Below, in pieces: positions 7,578 to 32,500 of a stretch of DNA of 64,000 nucleotides. The DNA is from Pocillopora damicornis. Lineage: Eukaryota. The stretch is from NCBI RefSeq assembly GCF_003704095.1, contig NW_020844929.1, positions 1-64,000 on the forward strand, in the 5' to 3' direction. Within the stretch, counting starts at the first letter, position 1. Each line of letters begins with the position of its first letter. Made by a program: the position numbers and the translations under genes. Under the pieces are notes generated by a model. It saw only the letters and a program-made list of their open reading frames with translations. It had not been told where the DNA came from and made no database searches.

Positions 7578-9610
7578 ATGGTTTGGAGGTATTTTTTCTT
7601 TTTATTTTTTTCTCTCCTCACTTCCACCAGGTGTTCACAGAACAGTTCTTATCCTAACAGTGGATCAACTAACGCTGAAAATGAAACCGAATCGACTGGA
7701 TTGAATTTTTCCATCTCAAGGCCGACAGAAGCTACAACATCTGTTTCCAGCGAAAATGCTCCTAGTAATAACTCTGTCTTGAAGAAAGAAGGTGCTCAAA
7801 ACTTTACAGTCGAGGAGGAGGAGTTGTGGTCATTTGAGCAAGATGAATCCGCATTCAAAAGAAATTTACCCTTCTTTCAGGAAAAGATGATTGATCGGCT
7901 GAGAACTTGGAAAGAAGTTCTGATCAATGCAACTAATCGGTGTGCGAAGCTAAATTACATTAGCAGTGCTATTGCAGCCGAACTAGAAACTAAATTCGTG
8001 GTCTTTCGAGCCCACAACGTTGCTGGCGAGGATGAATCTGATTATGGTAAATTTTTGACTCTTGAAACTTTTCACCCAGTGCTCATGCGGCAGAAGAAAA
8101 ACCATGACCTGGTTTCTGTTGCTTATATGTCCATCTTGGAACTGTGGCCTCTGTTGGTTTTGTGCTTTTCGTGTGCGGCTTTATCAGGAATGATCATCTG
8201 GCTTTTGGTGAGTATTGTGATCAGTCACACTTTGAGCAATAGGGATATTTATTTATCAGGTAGAGTTCGAAAACGCGTGATGGGGCAGACATAAATATTT
8301 TGCATATATTGCAAAGACAAGTGTTTTCAAAAGTATGTTATGAGCAGCTCTTAATGTCGAGTTTTTGACTAAACCAGCGATGAAGGATTCTATTTTAGTT
8401 AGATATCATCAGAGGCAAGCAGTCTTCGATGAGGACATATTCAAAAGCATAATTCGAGAAAGAAGACGCTTTAGCGCAGACAAGATGCCGAAAAAATTAT
8501 AATGTATGCTACTCAGTTTATTAATATCCCTTACTAACTGCCCTCTTGACTTTGCATGTTCAAGGATCATCGCTCGAATCCGGAGACTTTCTCCAGCCGA
8601 TTCTGGAAGGGCATTGCAGACGGAATGTGGTGGGCAATAGTTACCATGACAACAGTGGGGTAAGTTTGCTGACTGAGATAGAATGTTATGGAGAACGTTA
8701 CTTTCCGAAATCGTTCGAACACTCGTGTTGGCTGCTAATCCTTGGTCCGATAGAGGAAGAGTTTTTTTTTCTGGTAATAAATTTAGAAATTACATATTTT
8801 TATTTACTTGTGACTGATTTTAATTTGATCATTTGTCATTCGGCTCTAAAATTATTCTTTGCCTAGAATGCCAATGAAGGGATGGGGAAATGTACAATTC
8901 AGTAATTGCTGCGTGCCTCGTTTTAGACGTACGAGGTACAGCAATCTGTCTGGCCATAGACTTTGCTGCAATAAATCTCAAAGGGACTCTAGCGAGGATT
9001 CTTGAGCCAAACCCTGTAAGGGAAGAAATGAAATAACAAATAAACATTTTTACATTTTAAAATCAAGTGTAGACAAATTAACTTGTCGGTGATTTTAAGA
9101 TAACTTGGTTTGAACGCCTGAGTTGATGATGGAAATCAGACACCATAAATAGATTCTAGAGCTGACGTTTCGAGCGATATCCCTTCGTCAAAGGGAATTG
9201 AAAAGTTGTTGCTAAGTACAAATAATTGGACGATCTGTTTTCATTATAGTTAAGCCAAAACATTCCTTTCATTTAGAGATCCTACAGCATTCTTTCCTGT
9301 CCTTTACGTATCATTCACTCTTGTAAATTAGAAAGAGGAAGCTCTAAAACCAATTTCCAATACAGGTATGGTGACAAAGCTCCCAAGTCATGGTTTTCTC
9401 GTCTCTTTGCTGTTGTGTGGATGATAGCAGGAATAGTTTTATTGTCCATGTTCACGGCTCAGGTGTCGTCTCGTCTAACAACTCAGGAGCTAAAGGGCGA
9501 AGACCATTTGTTTGGCAAAAAGGTTAGAATATCGAGGGGTAAATATCCCACGACTAATATTAACACCCTTGCTGCTGTTACTGTTACTACTTTACTACTT
9601 TACTACAACC

Positions 9611-9650
<40 letters not shown>

Positions 9651-12600
9651 TTACGACTACTTCTTATATGCTGCTGCTGCTGATGCTACTACATTTACTA
9701 CTAATACACCTCTCACGCTCTCTCATTACCACGGCCAACGGCTCAAAAGTGTTTCAAAACCATTACTGGGGTGTCCTAGTAAAACAGTAGAACATAACCA
9801 GGAAATCTTTTGCCAGACTTCGCGTTTATTCATCCTATATCTTAGGAAAGGGGATATCTTAAGTGAGTGAATTTTCAAATTATTTTTGACATTTCGAATT
9901 GTGAGCAGCATTCAGTTCCTATATTAAAGGATCCGATGTGTAAGTGATACCTTTATCAGTCGGCTTTGTAATTTTAATTGTTACTCAGCACAATATGGCA
10001 TGTCGGAAATATATCGAAGCGTAAAAGAGAAGGCGTTTTCACGAATTGCATAAAGTTTATACAACCGCTGTCAAGAACAAAAGAAAACGCATATATTCCG
10101 CCTAATGAAATTGAAGTAATTTCGAATTTTTTGTGGAGAGATGAATATTTGTAATCCATTAGCTCTTAGAGCCTTGCGGCAAGGAGAGAACAGAAGATTT
10201 CATGCAGCTGAAAGACGTGAAATAATTTATCGCATGTTAGCGCTATTGCTCGGGCGTCTTGTTTGAGTAAACTGGCTATCCGTGGATTGATTGTTATTTC
10301 AGTTATTTTCAGTTATTTATTTGGCGACATTTGTATGCCACGGATCTCACGAGTCCAGCTGTTGCTGGAAAAAAAAGTTTTAAAGACTTCAAGTCCCTGC
10401 GGTATATTGATTAATGCTTGCATTATTCAGTGGGCCAAGATGATATACTAGAGTGATTAAAAAACCAAATAATGTGTTTATTCTTAAAAAAGAAATTAAA
10501 AAAAAGCTTTGAACATGTTGTTAGTGTTGGGGTGAATACTATTTTGGCCGCCCAAATTTCCCGTTCGCTACGTGTTAATTTATCACTCACCTATTTATTT
10601 TATATTTTAGGAAATTTGTAAGTATTGATATTAATTCCAGGGACAAGCAGATGTTTTCTTTGCATAGTCTTTTTCTTTTACATGAATAAAATTACGCCCT
10701 TGGCTGAAAACGAGTGCATTTTTCATGTAACACGAGTGTAAAGTTGTAACACAAGTGTAAAGTTGTAACACGAGTGTAAAATTGTAACACTAGTGTAAAA
10801 TTGTAACACGAGTGTAAAGTTGTAACACGAGTGTAAAGTTGTAACACGAGTTCAAAGTTGTAACACGAGTGCAAATCATAATTAGCACGCGCGCTGTCAA
10901 AGTTTCCTACGTTTTGCCTTTCTCTATGATGTTTTTTTCATGTAAATTTTTAATAAGTAATAACATGATTTCGAGTGGTATAAATAAGCACTTTTAAATA
11001 TTTCAAAGACTACAATTTATTGTCTCGTGCTTACTCATGCTTATAAATACCAAAATGTACTTGAAATCATGTCATTACCTATACTTAAATTTTCGTAGAA
11101 CGCTCCGACATTATGACATATGTATGAGATAATATTTTTTCTTATAAAAATATACATATATTCAAACAAATATTTAAAAATTCGATTACAAACGTCGCGA
11201 AAAGCGTTTTTTATTAAGGTATTTCAGTTCAGATACCACAGCCTACACTTAATAACACTCAGAAATTGCAATATATAATAGCCGTTATGTACAACTCATT
11301 CAGTATGGAGGTCTTTATCAATAACATTTCCTTCCGTATTTACGCAGATTGGGGTTCCTCCTGGTCTCCTTGATTCGAATTATGTTGAATACGAGATGTC
11401 ATTTTCTCTCGTCGAAGGTAAGTTAGCTTTTGGAACTACTCAGTCAGTGTCAATGACGTAGTTATAGGATGTCTTGGTTGGATCCAAGCCCTTTAACAAG
11501 ACAAAAAAAAAAGAAAAAGAAAAGGAAAAATTTAAACTATTGTAACGCTAAAAAAAGGAAAGATTTGTAATGTATCATTGTTTTGATGGTAGAAATTGAC
11601 GACCCCATAAATTCTGCCTCGAGTCTAAAGGGCCTTGATTCCACTTTGGTGTTCCACTGCAATGACAAAGAAGACGATGGTTGGGAAGCTTTGAAGTTTC
11701 TTCCGCTCTGCGACATTGGTGCCGCTTTTCTCTTACATCCTGACAACGACGACGAGTTACCTATGGATATTAAGGTTGAGGAGCGTTTTTTTAGATGCCT
11801 GAAGTCCAAAGTACGATCAGCGAGAATAAATATTACTGAACTTAGGCGAAATAAAAACAGAGAAGGCATGAAATCACACTCTTGCAAAAAGTTTCTACAG
11901 GAGCCAGATACCCTCAAGTTTCAGTTTAAGTGGGTTTATTTCAGTAGCCTATCACAGTATCTTGTTCCTTTTGGTGCACTTATGGGGGCAATCGTACTGG
12001 CGTTTATTTTTGGCTCTATCTACGATTTCTGCTGCCGTGAAAATAAGAAGAGGAAGAGCCTGAGGAAAGGAGGTGCGTGTAACTTTTCTTGACTTATTCC
12101 TTTTTATTCAGGTGGGTCTGAGATTCTGTAAAAATCATGGGCGTACAGAGTCATTTCGGAAAATATAAAAGTGTTCCTTCAAAATTGTTTATAGGATTTT
12201 TGTGCTGATAGGAAAGATCCTAAGTTGTTGCGGTTTTGTTATTTTCAGTGCGACTTGCTTTACATCTCGCAGTCTCTGCGTATAATCTCCCACTCTCCCC
12301 CCCCCTCCACAAGCCCTCCTTCCACCTCCTCGCTGCTCCATCTCCTACTAAGCAGTGTGTCGAGTGCTATTTTCATCATTTTATGAAGCCGGCCATATTT
12401 GATCTTGAGGCCGAGAGCTTCTGTTCTTCAAATCGTAATCTCTTTAAAGTATAGACGACGTTCTGAACAAATGCGATTTAATCTGCTCTAAGGGATGGGT
12501 GACATGTTGAATTTAGCTCATGCATTTGCTCTCGCGCGTTGGGGAATCTGTCAGTTATACGCATATTCGCAATTCTCTCCACGTTACCAGTCAATTCCAA

Positions 12601-13193
12601 AAGATATGCTTGGTTTCAAGCCTCGCAACAGATAACAAGGACTCCGTAATAAAGATACGCATTAAAAACATAACAGATAGGATGAGCGTAAGTACCCTTG
12701 TGTCCTTTTTGGACGGAAAAGTTTTGATTACCTTCATATCAATATTATATCTTGTTTCTTTATCCTTTAGCAAACTCTCTCCAAAGTCATTCAACTCAAG
12801 TAAGCCTCGCTCAAAAATCTGGTGATGACCACCAAGAGCTTGATATGGTGAAAAGCAAAGTCTAACATTAAGGAGCTGGTGCATTGAGAAGTAAATTGTA
12901 GAAATGTAAACGTAGTTATGACGCATTATTGCGTCCACATTGAAACTGCTAAAAGCTCTGTGTTCCTGCTATCTGTTCATTACTTTATGCCGACATTAAG
13001 GGACTTGGTGAAGTTTATAACTAATAAGTAAATGAAAATAAGTACGTAAATAGTTTCAAGTAGTTTTGCTGTCTAGTGGAAATACGAATGCATAAATTTT
13101 GTAGATACCCGCCCGAGGTCAACAGCGAAAAGAATCTCAAATTCAAGCGCTGTCAATACAGCTCCTAGAAACTTGGACGAAAATTTAAAATAG
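7578..13193 (+). CDS. GluR0-like K+-filter ion channel with iGluR-type topology (signal peptide, M1, pore loop, M3, extracellular domain, M4); 6 exons, 506 aa
   Basis: Exons 7578-8207, 8565-8659, 9366-9522, 11348-11417, 11593-12072 and 13105-13193, all GT-AG and phase-consistent (1521 nt). Spliced core: ...LSGMIIWLLDHRSNPETFSSRFWKGIADGMWWAIVTMTTVGYGDKAPKSWFSRLFAVVWMIAGIVLLSMFTAQVSSRLTTQELKGEDHLFGKKIGV...; late TM YLVPFGALMGAIVLAFIFGSIY; aataaa at 13255. The last exon is the least certain. Confidence 0.85.
9161..9193 (-). repeat. Minimal-hammerhead-like repeat fragment (core C3 mutated) in a channel intron
   Basis: Reverse complement is ctttgacgaagggatatcgctcgaaacgtcagc, matching the 23648-23681 motif. 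Confidence 0.6.
9603..9662 (+). repeat. Compound (CAC)n/(TAC)n microsatellite in channel intron 3
   Basis: Directly visible trinucleotide runs. Confidence 0.9.
10727..10872 (+). repeat. 19-bp tandem minisatellite (aaagttgtaacacgagtgt), about 7.5 copies
   Basis: Contiguous near-identical units with no spacers. Confidence 0.9.
10953..11082. mobile_element. MITE-like element with ~24-bp imperfect TIRs
   Basis: ataagtaataacatgatttcgagt (10953-10976) pairs with acttgaaatcatgtcattacctat (11059-11082). Confidence 0.6.
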
Positions 13194-13992
13194 ACGTCTG
13201 AGTGAAATGTTCTCAAAAGAGTTTGGTTTTAGCTTGATCTGGAGGCTAGAAAGTAATAAATGGCAAGTTTAAACGGCAAATGTATTTAACCGAGAAGTGC
13301 TATTCCATCATGTTCGTGAAGTCTGATCTTCCGGGTGAGAGTTGACCTAACACCAAGGAAGAGATGCCGCTAATAGTAACTGACGTTTGGACAACCTTAA
13401 CGGAAGTAATCTTTAGAGTCTGATGATGACTTCTGGTGATCTCTTCTCTCCCCGCATTTTCCACTCTAAAAAAAATTGACTGGTCGGATAAAAGATTGCG
13501 AGCAAGTATCAGCAACCTGTCATAATAAGACGCCTCTGCTGCCCAAACCGTACGAATAGGCTAATTGATGTTATTGATAACAATTTAGTAAGCAATTTTT
13601 ATAGGTTTTTGGATTGTAAATTAAGCTAAGGATAGTATTAAAATGTATGTAAGTAAATCCGCCTCGCTTATAATTGTATTGCAACGAATACTAGCTGTTT
13701 GCAAATAAAACGAGTGAATCCTCCAAAGAAAGGAATAATTAAACCTTTCGAACGTAATTGTAGGAATGTAATAATGACAATAATGATAATTTCCTTTATT
13801 TAAACACGATAAGGATTTAAGCTTTCCAGCGTGTGGGGTCGTGTTAATGTGCCAGCATGAATAAGGATCATTTCTACCCAATTTTTCACAATTTGCATGC
13901 AGTCGAAAACCCTCCTTTTTTGCTATGTCCGAGGAAAGGACCGGGAACGACAAAAAAACAGAAGACAAGACAAAGGACTGGGTCTCACAGTG

Positions 13993-19741: not shown

Positions 19742-21535
19742 CTATGTTGATGTTAAATCATATGATGATGGTGGGGGTGGGGGTGGCTCGTCTTCATCAG
19801 AATCAAACTCTGCATTTTCATCTTTCTGCCACTTTCCATCCAAGCCCATGATCCACCCAGCCTGTCGGAGGCGAGAAAAGTGTTTCCTCCTAGCCAGCTC
19901 TCCAGGACTTAACGGTGTCTTTTTCTGACTTTTTGGGCCAGGTGTATCAATTGATGGCTTCATGGATTGTTTAGTTTTCTCAAAATGATTGCTTTCCGAG
20001 TCCTTCACTGAATTTGACAAGTTTTTGCTTGATTCGGTCCTCTGCACATGTTTATAACCTGGTTTGTCATTACAGATGTCCAGGTCAATGGGCTTTCTGC
20101 GCTGAAAGAAAGGCAGCTGTTTTGATGTCCTTTCTTTGCTTTCTTTATGTTTTATTGAGCTTTTTGAGCCTTGAAGGGCCAACTCCTTTTTTTGTTGTGT
20201 AATCTTCAGCAATGGTGATTCATCTTCATTCGCATCATCCATAACCTTCTCCATGTATTTCATGTGTTCTCTCTTTTGCCGTATTTCAGCATCTTCTATC
20301 AGTTTCTCAAGTCTTACTTTGGCATCTGGAGGTTAAAGGGAAGTGAAGCAAAAGTAATTGTTGTGGAGTTGAATAAATCTTTTAGAAATACAAAATAGGA
20401 TAATACAAGAAAGTAGCTCCATTTTCTGCATATAAACACACACACACAACCCACAATTCAACCATCTGCTCTGAAGATAGGCTAACACTCAAAACATCAG
20501 CTTTGAAGCTCTTTAGCAGTGGCCAATTTACATCACCAACTCAGTTGATAACACCAAACGTTCTAATTTATACTCGCCCACAGATGTAGCACTTAAGTTT
20601 CTTTAGAAATTTACAGGTTACTAATCTGCGATTGGTAGATAAAGTACAAAATGACAGCTTTAGGAAAGAGAAAAAAGACGTTTGCCTGAAAAACATGTAA
20701 AATTCATGATGATTATAAATTAACTCCCCTTATCAACAGACTTTTTGTGATTGTGGAACATACACCACAGTTATACACAAAGTAAACAAACAAATGAAGG
20801 GAAAAAACAAACAAAAATTATAAACAAAACTAAACCAAACAAATTCTGGTTAACATGAAATTCTCTATCATCTCATGCTATTTAATTTGATTTGATTTGA
20901 TTTTTACACTTACATGAGAAATGTTTCTTCCCTTGCCTGTGAATTCTCAGTACAGCAACAGTGTCAAAAACTGGGCAGTGTTTACAAACTAGACAGGCAA
21001 ACCTAGAAAGAGCAAAACGAGTCTAAAATAGATTTGCAACAGACTAATAATAATTGTATCAATGCATACAAGTGTTCTGCATGCCCTGCTCGCTAGGATC
21101 AGTAATTTCGAAAGCGTCGACGTCGTGGGTCGAGAAAGATCGAGGAAGATGTACAGCTATACGTAGATGGTAAATTTTGAGTTCAGCCGTTGGACTGAGG
21201 AAGATGTTTTCTCAAGAGCTAAGCTTATCAAGTGGAAGTTAAAAGATAATTGTTACCTGCCATTTTTCGTGAGTGTGGCTTCGTCTTCGGGAATTTCTTC
21301 CAACAAAAGTTCGGATACTCGCTGTCTCTAAGACAGAGTAAGAACATGCAATTCATAATCAATGGAAATTTTCGTATTTTCGCCTATGTTTCGGCCTGGC
21401 AAACTGTTCACTAGGCCCAAATTAAAGATTAGTGTCGAGAGGGATTTGATTACTAAAGAAAAACGTTTTCACGAGTCTACGCACCTTTTGTACTCTTAAT
21501 GCAGTGGGGTCATCGCCAACTCTTTTAAATGACAT
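19742..21535 (-). CDS. SCNM1: Sodium channel modifier 1 (minor spliceosome zinc-finger protein); 4 exons, 264 aa
   Basis: Exons 21535-21485, 21327-21257, 21002-20914 and 20325-19742 (795 nt). MSFKRVGDDPTALRVQKRQRVSELLLEEIPEDEATLTKNGRFACLVCKHCPVFDTVAVLRIHRQGKKH (C2H2 finger) and the acidic C-terminal motif GWIMGLDGKWQKDENAEFDSDEDEPP. Confidence 0.95.
20468..20615 (+). repeat. Degenerate hammerhead-family (Penelope-type) repeat in SCNM1 intron 3
   Basis: gctctgaagataggctaacactcaaaacatcagc...aactcagttgataacacc...gtttctttagaaatttac. Confidence 0.65.
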
Positions 21536-29594: not shown

Positions 29595-32500
29595 ATGTAT
29601 TCTGTACGGCTTTTGGGTCTACTCGCAATGGGCCTCTTCGCAGCCGACGGATTTCGGTTCAGTTTTCAGCCGAAGTGCGGCAAAATTACTAATCCATTAT
29701 GCAGCCGTGTACTCCCGTACAACTTAACGCGTTTTCCAAACATATTTGGTCATCAAAGCGAATTTATAGCCAACAGAGCCATTCAGCTATTTAGCCCTCT
29801 GGTGAAGCAAGCGAACTGCTCCAAACACGCCGAGTTTTTCCTTTGCTCCTTCTATCTGCCGATATGCTTGCCAGGAATCGAAGAAGAGAACGTAATAAGG
29901 CCCTGCCGTTCCTTGTGCGAGCGAATCAAGGCGGACTGTTCAGCCGTAATACAGTACTGGCCGAGCTTTGTGAAATGCGAAGAACTACCTCAGTTCAAAG
30001 ATAGTGTGTGTATTCAGCCGGAATCTTTCATTGCTGAGCCAAAACCAACAAGTAAGTGATTATGAGATTCGTTTTGTATTTCAAGCGCGGTTTATAGCCT
30101 TTCAGTAAGGGCCAATTTGTGGCTTTGATATCAGAGATAACAAATTACGTTGAAGAGCATTAGCGCGCAAGTTACCCGCTAGGTAGACTTAAATGATGCT
30201 CTCTCCATTTCTCCGCAAGAAAACAGGTCGAAGAGTTGTGATAAAGCACTTTAAGATCTTAAAAGCTGTCTTACAGAGGCTGCTTGCGATGGCTGCTGAT
30301 CGTAAGACAGATATTTTCAACAAGACAGCTTCCTGAAATAATGAAGAAATGCGAAGTTACTGGTGTGTACTAGCGACGTGGCCGAGAGTGAATTTTTGCC
30401 GAAGAATCGACTATCATCATTTTCAAGACCTATTTGTCGTAATTTTGAGGGAAATTAACACTAAGGTAACGATGATAAAACAATTTTCATGGCACTTAGC
30501 AGGAAAATTTGAACTAAAAGTTATTTTCGTCGGTTTTCATGATCGTGAAGACATTTTGTGTGAAGTCGGTTAACGGGTGAAGAGTGGGTGTAAACAACAC
30601 AGCGGTGAGCGATACCACTATTTCATAGAGTCAAAGTGTGCTACCATTCTTTTTCCTGAAGCTCGAGTGTTTATTTGGAATCAGTGAACAAAAGCAATAG
30701 CTCTCGTACATCTTACACTGGGATTGAAATGATTCATCGTTTCTAATTTTTGGAAAATTAAACTCTTCTTCATTTATTATTCGTAAAGAAAACAAAGTTT
30801 CTCTTGATCATTCTCTCGCGAGAACAACTTCAAAAGATCACGTCGAAAATCTGACTCAAAACTCCATTGAAAATCTCAGGGACAAATGTTTTAATTTCCA
30901 TTACTGAGATAAGCGCTATCAGATACGATAAGATGAGATCCTTCAGCAAGTATCTTTGAAATTTAAAACAGGAGATTTCAATGTGTGCGTCTGCTCATTA
31001 AGAGGCCTGAGACACCCACTTCATTACAAGATTTATCCCACGGATGTTGGCAAATTGATTGGTGGTACTTAATGAATGAATACGCTGAAATAATTTCCTG
31101 AATGTACAGCCCACCTTGCGAATTTCTTATCCGGCTCATCCGGAATGTTTGTTTCGGATTTACGTTCATATGTTGTCGGAACTCTTCTGAAAGTGTCAAT
31201 TTTTCAACATTCTCCCGATAAAATTTTTCATTTGTCAGTGATTGATAGTGTTGTGTAAGATAGATACAATAACCACAGATGATTATTAAGATATCATTGA
31301 TAGAGACGGCGGCCATTATGACCTCATTGTCGCTTACTTTTCACGCAATGATCATGTGGGGATCAAATAGGGTCAATTATAACAAAGTGAATAAAACAAA
31401 CAAAGCATGACAAAAAACACAAACTCGAACAGACCAAAAAACAGTGTTTTAGGGTTAAGGTAAAGTTAAAGCATTTTCAATTTGGCCAAACGTTTTATAT
31501 AAACGTCAATTTTGTAGACAGTGTCAAGAAGGCTTATACCTAACACCTGAAAACAAGAAGGAAAAAAATTACCCTTGAACGTATCACCCATAAAACTGAA
31601 AACTCGAGGTCCGTGGATTTTCTAAAACGGCACGTTACTTCAGACGTCGTTTAAATCATTATCCCAAAACCTGAATGCATTTATTCGATTATTAGGCTGT
31701 TTCTTTTAAGATATGATTCGTGCAATTGCCGATATGTCACATCACAGACCCTCGGAAAGACGATATCCGTGACAGGACATACACGAGTCAAAGCTTATGT
31801 GACGTTGGAAAAAGTCAAAGGAACACTGTCATCCGTGCATGATACCCTTGAAGCTCGCTTACAAATAAAAATCAAGCTTCACACACGGAGAAAACCGCAA
31901 GAACTATGAACGGATGATCGGCAGGGCGGATGTCGTTTGTTGTGGGTGGATCAAAGCAACAGTGTACATACTAACTAACAACTTTTTTTGTTTTTACATC
32001 AATTTTTAAGACATCCGTTTTTTTTTTATCCAATTTCAGAGATCGTTAATGTCGCTCCGTGCGAGAGTAGACCTCCAGCTGATTACAGGTTTTATGCCAG
32101 CGGCCAGTATGATTATGGTAAGAATGTACATATGCTTGAAACTGAAAAAAAGTGTTTTTTTTTATCAAGCAAAGCGAAACCTTCAGGTTAGGTGACTAAA
32201 ACAGCTAAATACCACGATTAGTTTTCCCTGTTAAATATAGAAAAACAAGATCTAATTCAGCTTTTTCGACTGAAAATGACAATTCACCCTTCCAGTGGAT
32301 TTCAATGATGAAGAAAAAGCCGCCATTGTAACATATGTGTACTTATCACGGTTAACTTCATCGGCAATAGCGATCCCAATGCAATTGTAGGGAATAGCCA
32401 TGAAGTAGATTTTTAAAGCTGTTGGACTCTCTTGAAAACTCTGATCTTAAAATTATCTTATATAAATTAAAGGTTCACAGGCTTCCACATCAATGATCTC

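Follow-up and report, generated by a model that had tools for sequence, protein, structure and literature searches.

GluR0 of Synechocystis is the prokaryotic potassium-selective glutamate receptor (Chen et al. 1999, as cited in PMC12226733), and it has many bacterial relatives that combine the Pfam domains SBP_bac_3, Lig_chan and Ion_trans_2. Ligand-binding cores of this type are solved (1ii5 and the Nostoc core 2pyy). In these proteins the binding-protein domain is interrupted by the pore, and there is no amino-terminal domain. Among animals, the rotifer receptor AvGluR1 (2011, as described in PMC12332018 and PMC12226733) is a receptor-type channel that keeps the potassium-channel signature, has an M4 helix, and is described as having the full eukaryotic architecture and as selective for K+ over Na+ (PMC12226733). 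The full eukaryotic architecture includes an amino-terminal domain. Canonical animal ionotropic glutamate receptors (AMPA, kainate, NMDA, delta, epsilon) have a non-selective cation pore with a Q/R/N site instead of GYG, the SYTANLAAF gate and an amino-terminal domain. Here we analyzed a gene in a 64,000-nucleotide stretch of the coral Pocillopora damicornis (NW_020844929.1, positions 1 to 64,000; hereafter the window). The gene is spliced and expressed, and combines a receptor-type layout with a textbook potassium-channel filter. It is a fast-evolving member of a large animal family, which is not described in the glutamate-receptor papers that we could search.

The preliminary description proposed that six phase-consistent exons encode a 506-aa protein, in which an intron splits the filter TTVG|YGD. 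This observation was confirmed, except that the six exons sum to 1527 nt and thus encode 508 aa. An in-frame stop at 7557 makes the ATG at 7578 the first in-frame start. The features, by position in the window, are as follows.

7514-7577 (+): 5' UTR, as far as RNA contigs reach (they start at 7514 in run X3 and 7527 in run X12), with an out-of-frame upstream ATG at 7565
7578-8207 (+): exon 1
7578-7634 (+): exon 1, residues 1-19, signal-peptide-like N-terminus
7635-7862 (+): exon 1, residues 20-95, Ser/Glu/Asn/Thr-rich region with five N-X-S/T sequons, variable between species
7863-8141 (+): exon 1, residues 96-188, shortened S1 segment with the invariant Cys122, the F-x-V-F strand and the H-P-V-L strand
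8142-8207 (+): exon 1, residues 189-210, M1, conserved in paralogues
8208-8564 (+): intron 1 (GT..AG)
8565-8659 (+): exon 2, M1-P linker, pore helix with WW, and the first half of the filter (TTV plus two bases of the Gly codon), matching Ion_trans_2
8660-9365 (+): intron 2 (GT..AG), which splits the filter at a position shared by the paralogues
9366-9522 (+): exon 3, third base of the Gly codon, YGD of the filter (9367-9375), M3 (9403-9459), gate motif SMFTAQVSSRLT (9445-9480) and the start of S2
9523-11347 (+): intron 3 (GT..AG), with a (TAC)n microsatellite and a 19-bp tandem array
11348-11417 (+): exon 4, first strand and turn of S2 (I-G-V-P-P-G), aligned to the conserved IGxxxG of bacterial and animal relatives
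11418-11592 (+): intron 4 (GT..AG)
11593-12072 (+): exon 5
11593-11963 (+): exon 5, remainder of S2
11964-12020 (+): exon 5, M4
12021-12072 (+): exon 5, CC pair and basic juxtamembrane tail
12073-12770 (+): intron 5 (GT..AG)
12771-12865 (+): exon 6, C-terminal tail and stop codon (TAA at 12863-12865)
12866-13390 (+): 3' UTR, continuing past 13390, because the X3 contig carries 402 more nucleotides beyond the stretch compared

Joining of these exons in transcripts had been set as a test beforehand. All five junctions (8207|8565, 8659|9366, 9522|11348, 11417|11593 and 12072|12771) appeared as GT..AG joints in RNA contigs of runs X1, X3 and X12, which come from three different studies (two poly-A libraries and one oligo-dT library). 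One contig of 2515 nt (X3 record 21) carried every exon, from 7514 to beyond 13390. The neighboring genes, a galactosyltransferase, SCNM1 and an Fz-domain gene, are animal genes. The possibility that the locus is a decaying copy or bacterial contamination could be raised from its long branch and reduced S1, but it is contradicted by the intact reading frame across six exons, the fully spliced poly-A RNA, the five spliceosomal introns, the animal neighbors and the conserved orthologues in other corals, and we consider it very unlikely.

The protein was analyzed exon by exon, without joining the exons, and through full-length coral orthologues (P0184 and P0186) and relatives from the protein database. 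Hydropathy analysis of each exon found three TM-grade segments: residues 192-210 of exon 1, residues 13-31 of exon 3 and residues 124-142 of exon 5, with Kyte-Doolittle values of 2.44, 2.37 and 2.19, respectively. M1 corresponds to the model helix 123-144 in P0184, and M4 aligned to M4 of P0191, the family member of Nematostella. Exon 1 contains six N-X-S/T sequons. The signal peptide looks plausible by eye, with one basic residue followed by about 12 hydrophobic residues, and every orthologue starts the same way. The sequon-rich region is absent from P0184 and P0186. Only about 95 low-complexity residues precede S1 in this gene and about 40 in the orthologues, thus there is no amino-terminal domain, although a few other family members carry CUB and Ig domains instead.

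The pore module matched both Ion_trans_2 and Lig_chan (PF00060). Exon 3 alone gave Ion_trans_2 3.7e-7 and Lig_chan 8.7e-7; its Lig_chan score of 29.3 bits was just under the curated cut-off of 30.8, because it is only a fragment of the module. The orthologue P0184 scored 54.2 bits for Ion_trans_2 and 35.7 bits for Lig_chan, and the partial orthologue P0014 scored 40.4 bits for Lig_chan, both Lig_chan scores being above the cut-off. In contrast, Pfam found no SBP_bac_3 or Lig_chan-Glu_bd domain in any animal member. The pore of the P0184 model (residues 106-222) superposed on potassium channels such as KcsA, Kv, KCNQ and MloK1 at Z 10-11, with rmsd 2-3 Å over about 110 residues. The orientation in the membrane is, however, inferred to be inverted compared with these channels, gating would come from an extracellular clamshell rather than from a voltage sensor or a cytosolic domain, and there is an extra M4.

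The preliminary description also noted a resemblance to GluR0, and this resemblance is real. Apart from animal relatives, the best database matches were bacterial SBP_bac_3 + Lig_chan + Ion_trans_2 proteins, with E 1e-17 to 1e-26 at 29-52% identity over the matched part; identity reached 35-52% in the pore region. The only listed hits that carry no Lig_chan entry and are not exon-1 fragments of the family scored worse (E 2.5e-9 or higher), apart from one 278-aa fragment that the tree later placed inside the animal clade. Comparison of the animal profile with the bacterial profile by hhalign gave probability 100 and E 4.6e-40 over 203 columns, from M1 to the end of S2. The filter T-T-V-G-Y-G-D-K-A-P, the WW pore helix, the gate motif F-T-A-x-(I/V)-(S/T)-(S/T)-x-L-T and the absence of an amino-terminal domain are shared with the GluR0-type proteins. 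The animal family differs in its M4 and cytosolic tail, its signal peptide and its spliceosomal introns, and Pfam no longer recognizes its outer domain; in this gene, in addition, S1 is shortened and a sequon-rich stretch has been added. The bacterial relatives are 350-391 aa long, and their profile ends about a dozen positions after the aligned S2, leaving no room for a further helix.

The SYTANLAAF gate motif of eukaryotic receptors is not kept. In the aligned nine residues of exon 3 only T and A are shared, and 2 of 9 residues falls below the cut-off of four used by the main metazoan survey (PMC6307864), which may explain why the family was not reported there.

To examine the fold of the family, we modeled P0191, and obtained a confident model (pLDDT 87, pTM 0.76). 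All listed Foldseek matches of this model, to rank 50, were NMDA or AMPA receptor chains, with E about 1e-13 to 1e-12 and 413-487 aligned columns for a 485-residue model, consistent with the LBD-TMD layout S1-M1-P-M3-S2-M4. The best rigid-body match was the GluR0 core 2pyy (Z 20.7, rmsd 2.2 Å, 202 of 212 residues, model range 75-411), followed by 1ii5 (Z 20.1) and amino-acid-binding proteins (Z 19-20). The link from the window gene to this predicted fold goes through P0184, which the exons matched at 54% (exon 1), 61% (exon 4) and 40% (exon 5) identity. Comparison of the P0184 subclade with the P0191 clade by hhalign gave E 2.7e-47 over 329 columns, from P0184 residue 54 to 413, running from the second half of S1 through S2. 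All listed Foldseek matches of the P0184 model were glutamate receptors, with 270-360 columns, and the best solved match of the S2-exon profile was 2pyy (E 0.018).

By sequence alone, the best solved matches of the pore were KcsA, Kv and KCNQ channels, which could suggest an ordinary-orientation potassium channel with a cytosolic N-terminus, two pore helices and an unrelated extra helix, whose likeness to receptors is superficial. This reading is very unlikely, because the Lig_chan match is above its cut-off, the homology to GluR0-type proteins runs through S2, the outer segments of the family form a predicted GluR0-like clamshell, and the hydrophobic N-terminus is followed by a first segment with six sequons.

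The outer domain of this gene's own orthologue was, however, modeled with low confidence (pLDDT values given as about 55-68 and as 46-70), and no rigid-body match to a binding protein was found for it. About 45 residues of S1 in P0191 (63-109), plus a strand-helix unit, had no detectable counterpart in P0184. Lobe 1 may therefore be incomplete, and the domain may not close on a ligand. In an alignment that is unreliable in S1, the usual ligand-contact residues were not conserved; the S1 and S2 positions kept in bacterial relatives varied among animal members and differed in P0184 and P0186. The gene also sits on a long branch of 1.25. These results leave it possible, though less likely than not, that the outer domain of this member is vestigial, and that the protein is not opened by a ligand of its own but would work as a leak or otherwise-gated potassium channel, or only as a modulatory subunit in heteromers with ligand-binding paralogues, much as orphan subunits do in other receptor families; at least 49 other paralogous loci are available as partners. 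On the other hand, the outer segments are still conserved among coral orthologues at 40-54% identity with invariant Cys, Pro and Phe positions, which argues that they are under constraint, and S2 keeps the strand-helix pattern of the family.

The preliminary description missed that the gene is not a one-off. The genome of P. damicornis contains 59 exons similar to exon 2 and at least 50 loci with correctly ordered pairs of exons 2 and 3 that split the filter in the same way. The family occurs across Cnidaria and in two hemichordates, and the animal clade was supported with SH-aLRT 97. Insect and other protostome IRs, which are cation channels descended from canonical receptors, are also large, tandemly arrayed, fast-diverging families, mostly without an amino-terminal domain and with variable ligand pockets. 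This is a functional analogy only, and a chemosensory role for the coral family is a conjecture.

The signature T-T-V-G-Y-G-D was invariant or nearly so across 57 animal sequences. Filter sequence alone does not always predict selectivity, and in this family the pore loop sits in the inferred inverted, receptor-type orientation with an added M4 packing on the pore, so a ligand-gated channel with little or no preference for potassium is conceivable. We consider it unlikely, because the full signature is present with the WW pore helix and the following Asp, and because GluR0, which has the same signature, is potassium-selective and AvGluR1 is described as selective for K+ over Na+.

The interpretation in the preliminary description, a ligand-gated, K+-selective and inhibitory channel with strongly diverged S1/S2 lobes, was thus supported only in part. 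That it is an animal gene related to GluR0 with strongly diverged lobes was supported, whereas potassium selectivity, ligand gating and an inhibitory role remain inference, and a complete clamshell is not demonstrated for this member. Our analysis established the gene model, its expression, the pore type, the kinship with GluR0-type proteins, the predicted family fold and the family size; the topology, tetramer formation, potassium selectivity, ligand gating and physiological role are inferred.

We favor, with moderate confidence, the view that the gene encodes one subunit of a presumably tetrameric channel, with a signal peptide, an extracellular S1 segment, M1, a re-entrant pore loop, M3 with a GluR0-type gate motif, an extracellular S2 segment, M4 and a cytosolic tail. 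In this view, the animal family descended from, or shares ancestry with, prokaryotic GluR0-type receptors, and S1 and S2 of its well-conserved members form a complete binding-protein clamshell like the GluR0 core. The present gene would be a fast-evolving member that gained a glycosylation-rich N-terminal stretch. The first part of its S1 has no detectable counterpart, and in the alignment the positions that contact amino-acid ligands in relatives are not conserved; its ligand would therefore probably not be glutamate. By analogy with GluR0 and other glutamate receptors, closure of the clamshell on an extracellular ligand would pull on the M3 gate, and potassium would then pass, driving the membrane towards the potassium equilibrium potential.

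The region was found to hold a six-exon gene on the + strand. The exons, together with the neighbouring reading frames and the smaller features of the locus, are as follows.

2861-3856, + strand: neighbouring reading frame matching Galactosyl_T (3.5e-40), a galactosyltransferase
7565-7657: upstream 30-codon reading frame, whose ATG lies 13 bases before the main start in another frame
7578-8207, + strand: exon E1, a hydrophobic N-terminus, about 75 Ser/Glu/Asn/Thr-rich residues with five sequons (a sixth lies further on), a conserved stretch of about 90 residues, and M1
8565-8659, + strand: exon E2, the pore helix with WW, and T-T-V
9366-9522, + strand: exon E3, (G)YGD, M3 and the motif SMFTAQVSSRLT
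9585-9661 and 10726-10875: repeats in intron 3, a (TAC)26 microsatellite and a 19-bp unit repeated 7.9 times
11348-11417, + strand: exon E4, and 11593-12072, + strand: exon E5, which together add about 150 further residues, a third hydrophobic helix, then CC and a basic run
12771-12865, + strand: exon E6, a short tail
19742-20263, - strand: neighbouring reading frame matching the acidic C-terminus of SCNM1 (1.3e-19)
29595-30059, + strand: neighbouring reading frame matching an Fz domain (3.8e-25)

The exons sum to 1527 nt, or 508 aa, two more than the 506 aa counted in the preliminary description, and an in-frame stop at 7557 fixes the start at 7578. RNA contigs of three sequencing runs from three studies (X1, X3 and X12; two poly-A libraries and one oligo-dT library, labelled as coral material) showed all five introns as GT..AG joints at exactly these positions. 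One contig of 2515 nt carried the whole mRNA from 7514 to beyond 13390. The intron between 8659 and 9366 splits the filter, as had been described. The observation of a spliced gene with a divided potassium-channel filter was thus confirmed.

The upstream ATG lies inside the transcribed 5' UTR, and the reading frame it opens overlaps the main ATG. At 12823, in exon 6, RNA contigs of two runs (X2 and X3) lacked three bases, which is an in-frame difference of one codon in the C-terminal tail between samples or species. One X3 contig matched only the 32 bases at 8628-8659 of the filter-coding exon and then continued with other sequence on both sides; it is probably the transcript of another channel gene that shares the filter-coding sequence. 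In intron 3, the region of the 19-bp array showed very high summed RNA-contig depth (up to about 640) and many contigs that ran on into unrelated sequence; it is probably part of a dispersed repeat that is transcribed elsewhere. With its neighbouring reading frames for a galactosyltransferase, an SCNM1-like protein and an Fz domain, this is an ordinary animal locus, and the readings of bacterial contamination and of a pseudogene were rejected.

To examine the relationships of the gene, we searched with individual exons and then with full-length relatives from the protein database. In Pfam, E3 alone matched both Ion_trans_2 (3.7e-7) and Lig_chan (8.7e-7), while E1, E4, E5 and E6 matched nothing; Pfam also found nothing significant for the S1 exons or the S2 exons of paralogues. 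A whole-library HMMER search with E1 returned only 18 exon-sized reading frames from coral DNA and no full-length protein. These frames from other corals show that the sequon-rich stretch is variable, while the last 110 residues are conserved. One hit, P0014 from Desmophyllum pertusum, is a partial spliced orthologue covering M1 to M3, and it matched Lig_chan above the cut-off. A search of the genome with E5 found no paralogue at E 0.01 or better, indicating that S2 of this gene is too diverged to be detected in that way.

Two rounds of homology search, starting from P0014 and from the paralogue P0019, reached full-length proteins. P0184 (473 aa) and P0186 (463 aa) are orthologues of the gene, with exon identities of 54% for E1, 61% for E4 and 40% for E5. 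Other members of the family came from Stylophora, Oculina, Porites, Acropora, Montipora, Nematostella, Exaiptasia, Actinia, the octocoral Paramuricea and the hydrozoan Hydractinia, and also from the hemichordates Saccoglossus and Glandiceps; one of the underlying searches gave 817 database hits. All are named "uncharacterized" or "potassium channel domain-containing", or wrongly "Kv subfamily F member 1" or "Cubilin". Some members, P0264 (Acropora cervicornis, 732 aa) and P0265 (Paramuricea clavata, 692 aa), carry CUB and immunoglobulin domains ahead of the channel body, and their public names, "Cubilin" and "Kv subfamily F member 1", look like misnomers. In D. pertusum, the orthologue P0014 (locus tag OS493_037109) has the locus tag next to that of P0185 (OS493_037108), a member of the sister subclade, on the same contig, while no other family member was found on contig C1564 of the P. 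damicornis genome.

Apart from these animal proteins, the best hits were hundreds of bacterial proteins of 350-391 aa with SBP_bac_3 + Lig_chan + Ion_trans_2, that is, GluR0-type receptors, which scored E 1e-17 to 1e-26 at 29-52% identity over the matched part. In one of these searches, the listed hits that carry no Lig_chan entry and are not exon-1 fragments of the family scored E 2.5e-9 or worse, with the single exception of a 278-aa fragment that the tree later placed inside the animal clade. The likeness to GluR0 claimed in the preliminary description is therefore correct, and the reading of the gene as an ordinary potassium channel was rejected.

We next tested whether the homology extends beyond the pore. 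Profile-profile alignment (hhalign) of 14 animal sequences against 26 bacterial ones gave probability 100 and E 4.6e-40 over 203 columns, running from M1 through M3 and to the end of S2. A profile of the main S2 exon, built from 11 paralogues plus this gene, found the Nostoc GluR0 ligand-binding core 2pyy as its best solved match (E 0.018), followed mainly by amino-acid-binding proteins. The S1 profile of paralogues gave only one weak hit among solved structures, a binding-protein domain of 5gzs at E 0.86, which is suggestive only. A profile of 57 animal sequences had only potassium channels and similar small pore proteins among its 60 best matches to solved structures, because the pore dominates.

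The Nematostella member P0191, folded with 79 aligned sequences, gave a confident predicted model (pLDDT 87, pTM 0.76). All listed Foldseek matches of this model (to rank 50) were NMDA or AMPA receptor chains at E about 1e-13 to 1e-12, with 413-487 aligned columns for a model of 485 residues, so the whole chain has the LBD-TMD layout. Rigid-body alignment ranked the Nostoc GluR0 core first (2pyy: Z 20.7, rmsd 2.2 Å, 202 of 212 residues, model range 75-411), while the Synechocystis core 1ii5 scored Z 20.1 and many amino-acid-binding proteins scored Z 19-20. In the family, therefore, S1 and S2 are predicted from this model to make a complete clamshell.

The orthologue P0184 gave a weaker model (pLDDT 65), in which the membrane core was above 88 but the outer parts were at 46-70. 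All its listed Foldseek matches were again glutamate receptors, with 270-360 columns at E about 1e-6 to 1e-5. Both rigid-body searches with this model recovered essentially only the pore, which superposed on Kv, KCNQ and MloK1 at Z 10-11; the one exception was an AMPA receptor LBD-TMD row at Z 8.3. The P0184 subclade was linked to the P0191 clade by hhalign at E 2.7e-47 over 329 columns, from P0184 residue 54 to 413, which covers the second half of S1, the pore, S2 and M4. Residues 63-109 of P0191 and one strand-helix unit have no counterpart, and the positions conserved in bacterial and other animal members differ in P0184 and P0186 in an alignment that is unreliable in S1. This member is homologous throughout, but its lobe 1 appears cut down, and a complete clamshell is not shown for it. 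The shortened S1 makes a vestigial or re-purposed outer domain a serious, although less likely, alternative for this gene.

The P. damicornis genome has 61 exon-3-like and 59 exon-2-like matches, of which 50 pair up in the right order and strand within 4 kb, at a median distance of about 520 bp. Every locus that we inspected has the same M1 | pore-helix | YGD-M3 exon structure with the intron in the filter, and paralogues also share S2, M4 and coiled-coil tail exons. Several loci lie in tandem arrays on contigs C2502, C374, C629, C2688, C2563 and C2218 of this genome, with members a few kb apart at C2502:466-500 kb, C374:66-94 kb, C629:90-294 kb and C2688:49-148 kb. One exon-2-like match (C2073:43589-43675) contains a TGA, so some copies may be pseudogenes.

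In a quick maximum-likelihood tree, the animal sequences formed one group (SH-aLRT 97) apart from the bacterial group (93), and the orthologues of the gene sat on a long branch (1.25) inside an anthozoan subgroup. This tree lacked canonical glutamate receptors, AvGluR1 and Synechocystis GluR0, and its potassium-channel outgroup consisted of fragments, two of which (P0060 and P0098) turned out to belong to the animal and bacterial receptor groups. Its root is therefore weak, and it neither places the family relative to canonical receptors nor settles descent versus transfer.

Textbook accounts link bacterial GluR0 to animal glutamate receptors through a single odd rotifer protein, AvGluR1, and reviews and research papers up to 2025-2026 name only these two as receptors with a potassium-channel filter. 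We found no description of the present family in the literature searched, which did not cover most subscription journals. The main survey of metazoan glutamate receptors dropped sequences with fewer than four conserved residues of SYTANLAAF (PMC6307864), and this family would fail that filter, with two of nine residues in this gene and about three in paralogues.

By homology with GluR0 and other glutamate receptors, four subunits would form a pore, the pore loop would enter from the cytosolic side, ligand binding in the outer domain would pull M3 open, and the intact filter would pass potassium, which would hyperpolarise or clamp the cell. While the gene structure is confirmed and the receptor-type architecture is supported by the analyses, these steps of assembly, orientation, gating and potassium conduction are inferred. 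The interpretation in the preliminary description, a ligand-gated and potassium-selective channel of the glutamate-receptor type, was supported for its architecture, its functional side being plausible by homology alone. Within the glutamate-receptor superfamily the gene is a variant in which a GluR0-type pore is combined with M4 and an apparently reduced lobe 1. It is not unique in its genome, and its interest lies mostly in the family.

A broader reading is possible but tentative: animals would have a large, so far undescribed clade of receptor-type channels that are GluR0 plus an M4 helix, without an amino-terminal domain, with at least 50 loci in one coral and present across Cnidaria and in hemichordates. 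In this view, the channels would be ligand-gated and potassium-selective, serving as fast inhibitory or chemosensory receptors of a kind not known in animals, and the gene studied here would be a remodelled member with a non-amino-acid ligand. The size of the family and its tandem arrays resemble those of chemoreceptor families. For this particular gene, the added interest is that it shows how far the outer domain can be cut down while the pore stays almost unchanged. A family of dozens of genes per genome in corals, sea anemones, octocorals, a hydrozoan and acorn worms, with the GluR0 pore and clamshell plus the eukaryotic M4, would give direct material for testing how M4 and, later, the amino-terminal domain and the loss of potassium selectivity arose. 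It would also bear on whether the family entered animals by descent or by transfer, and on whether animals use ligand-gated potassium channels for fast inhibition or chemoreception.
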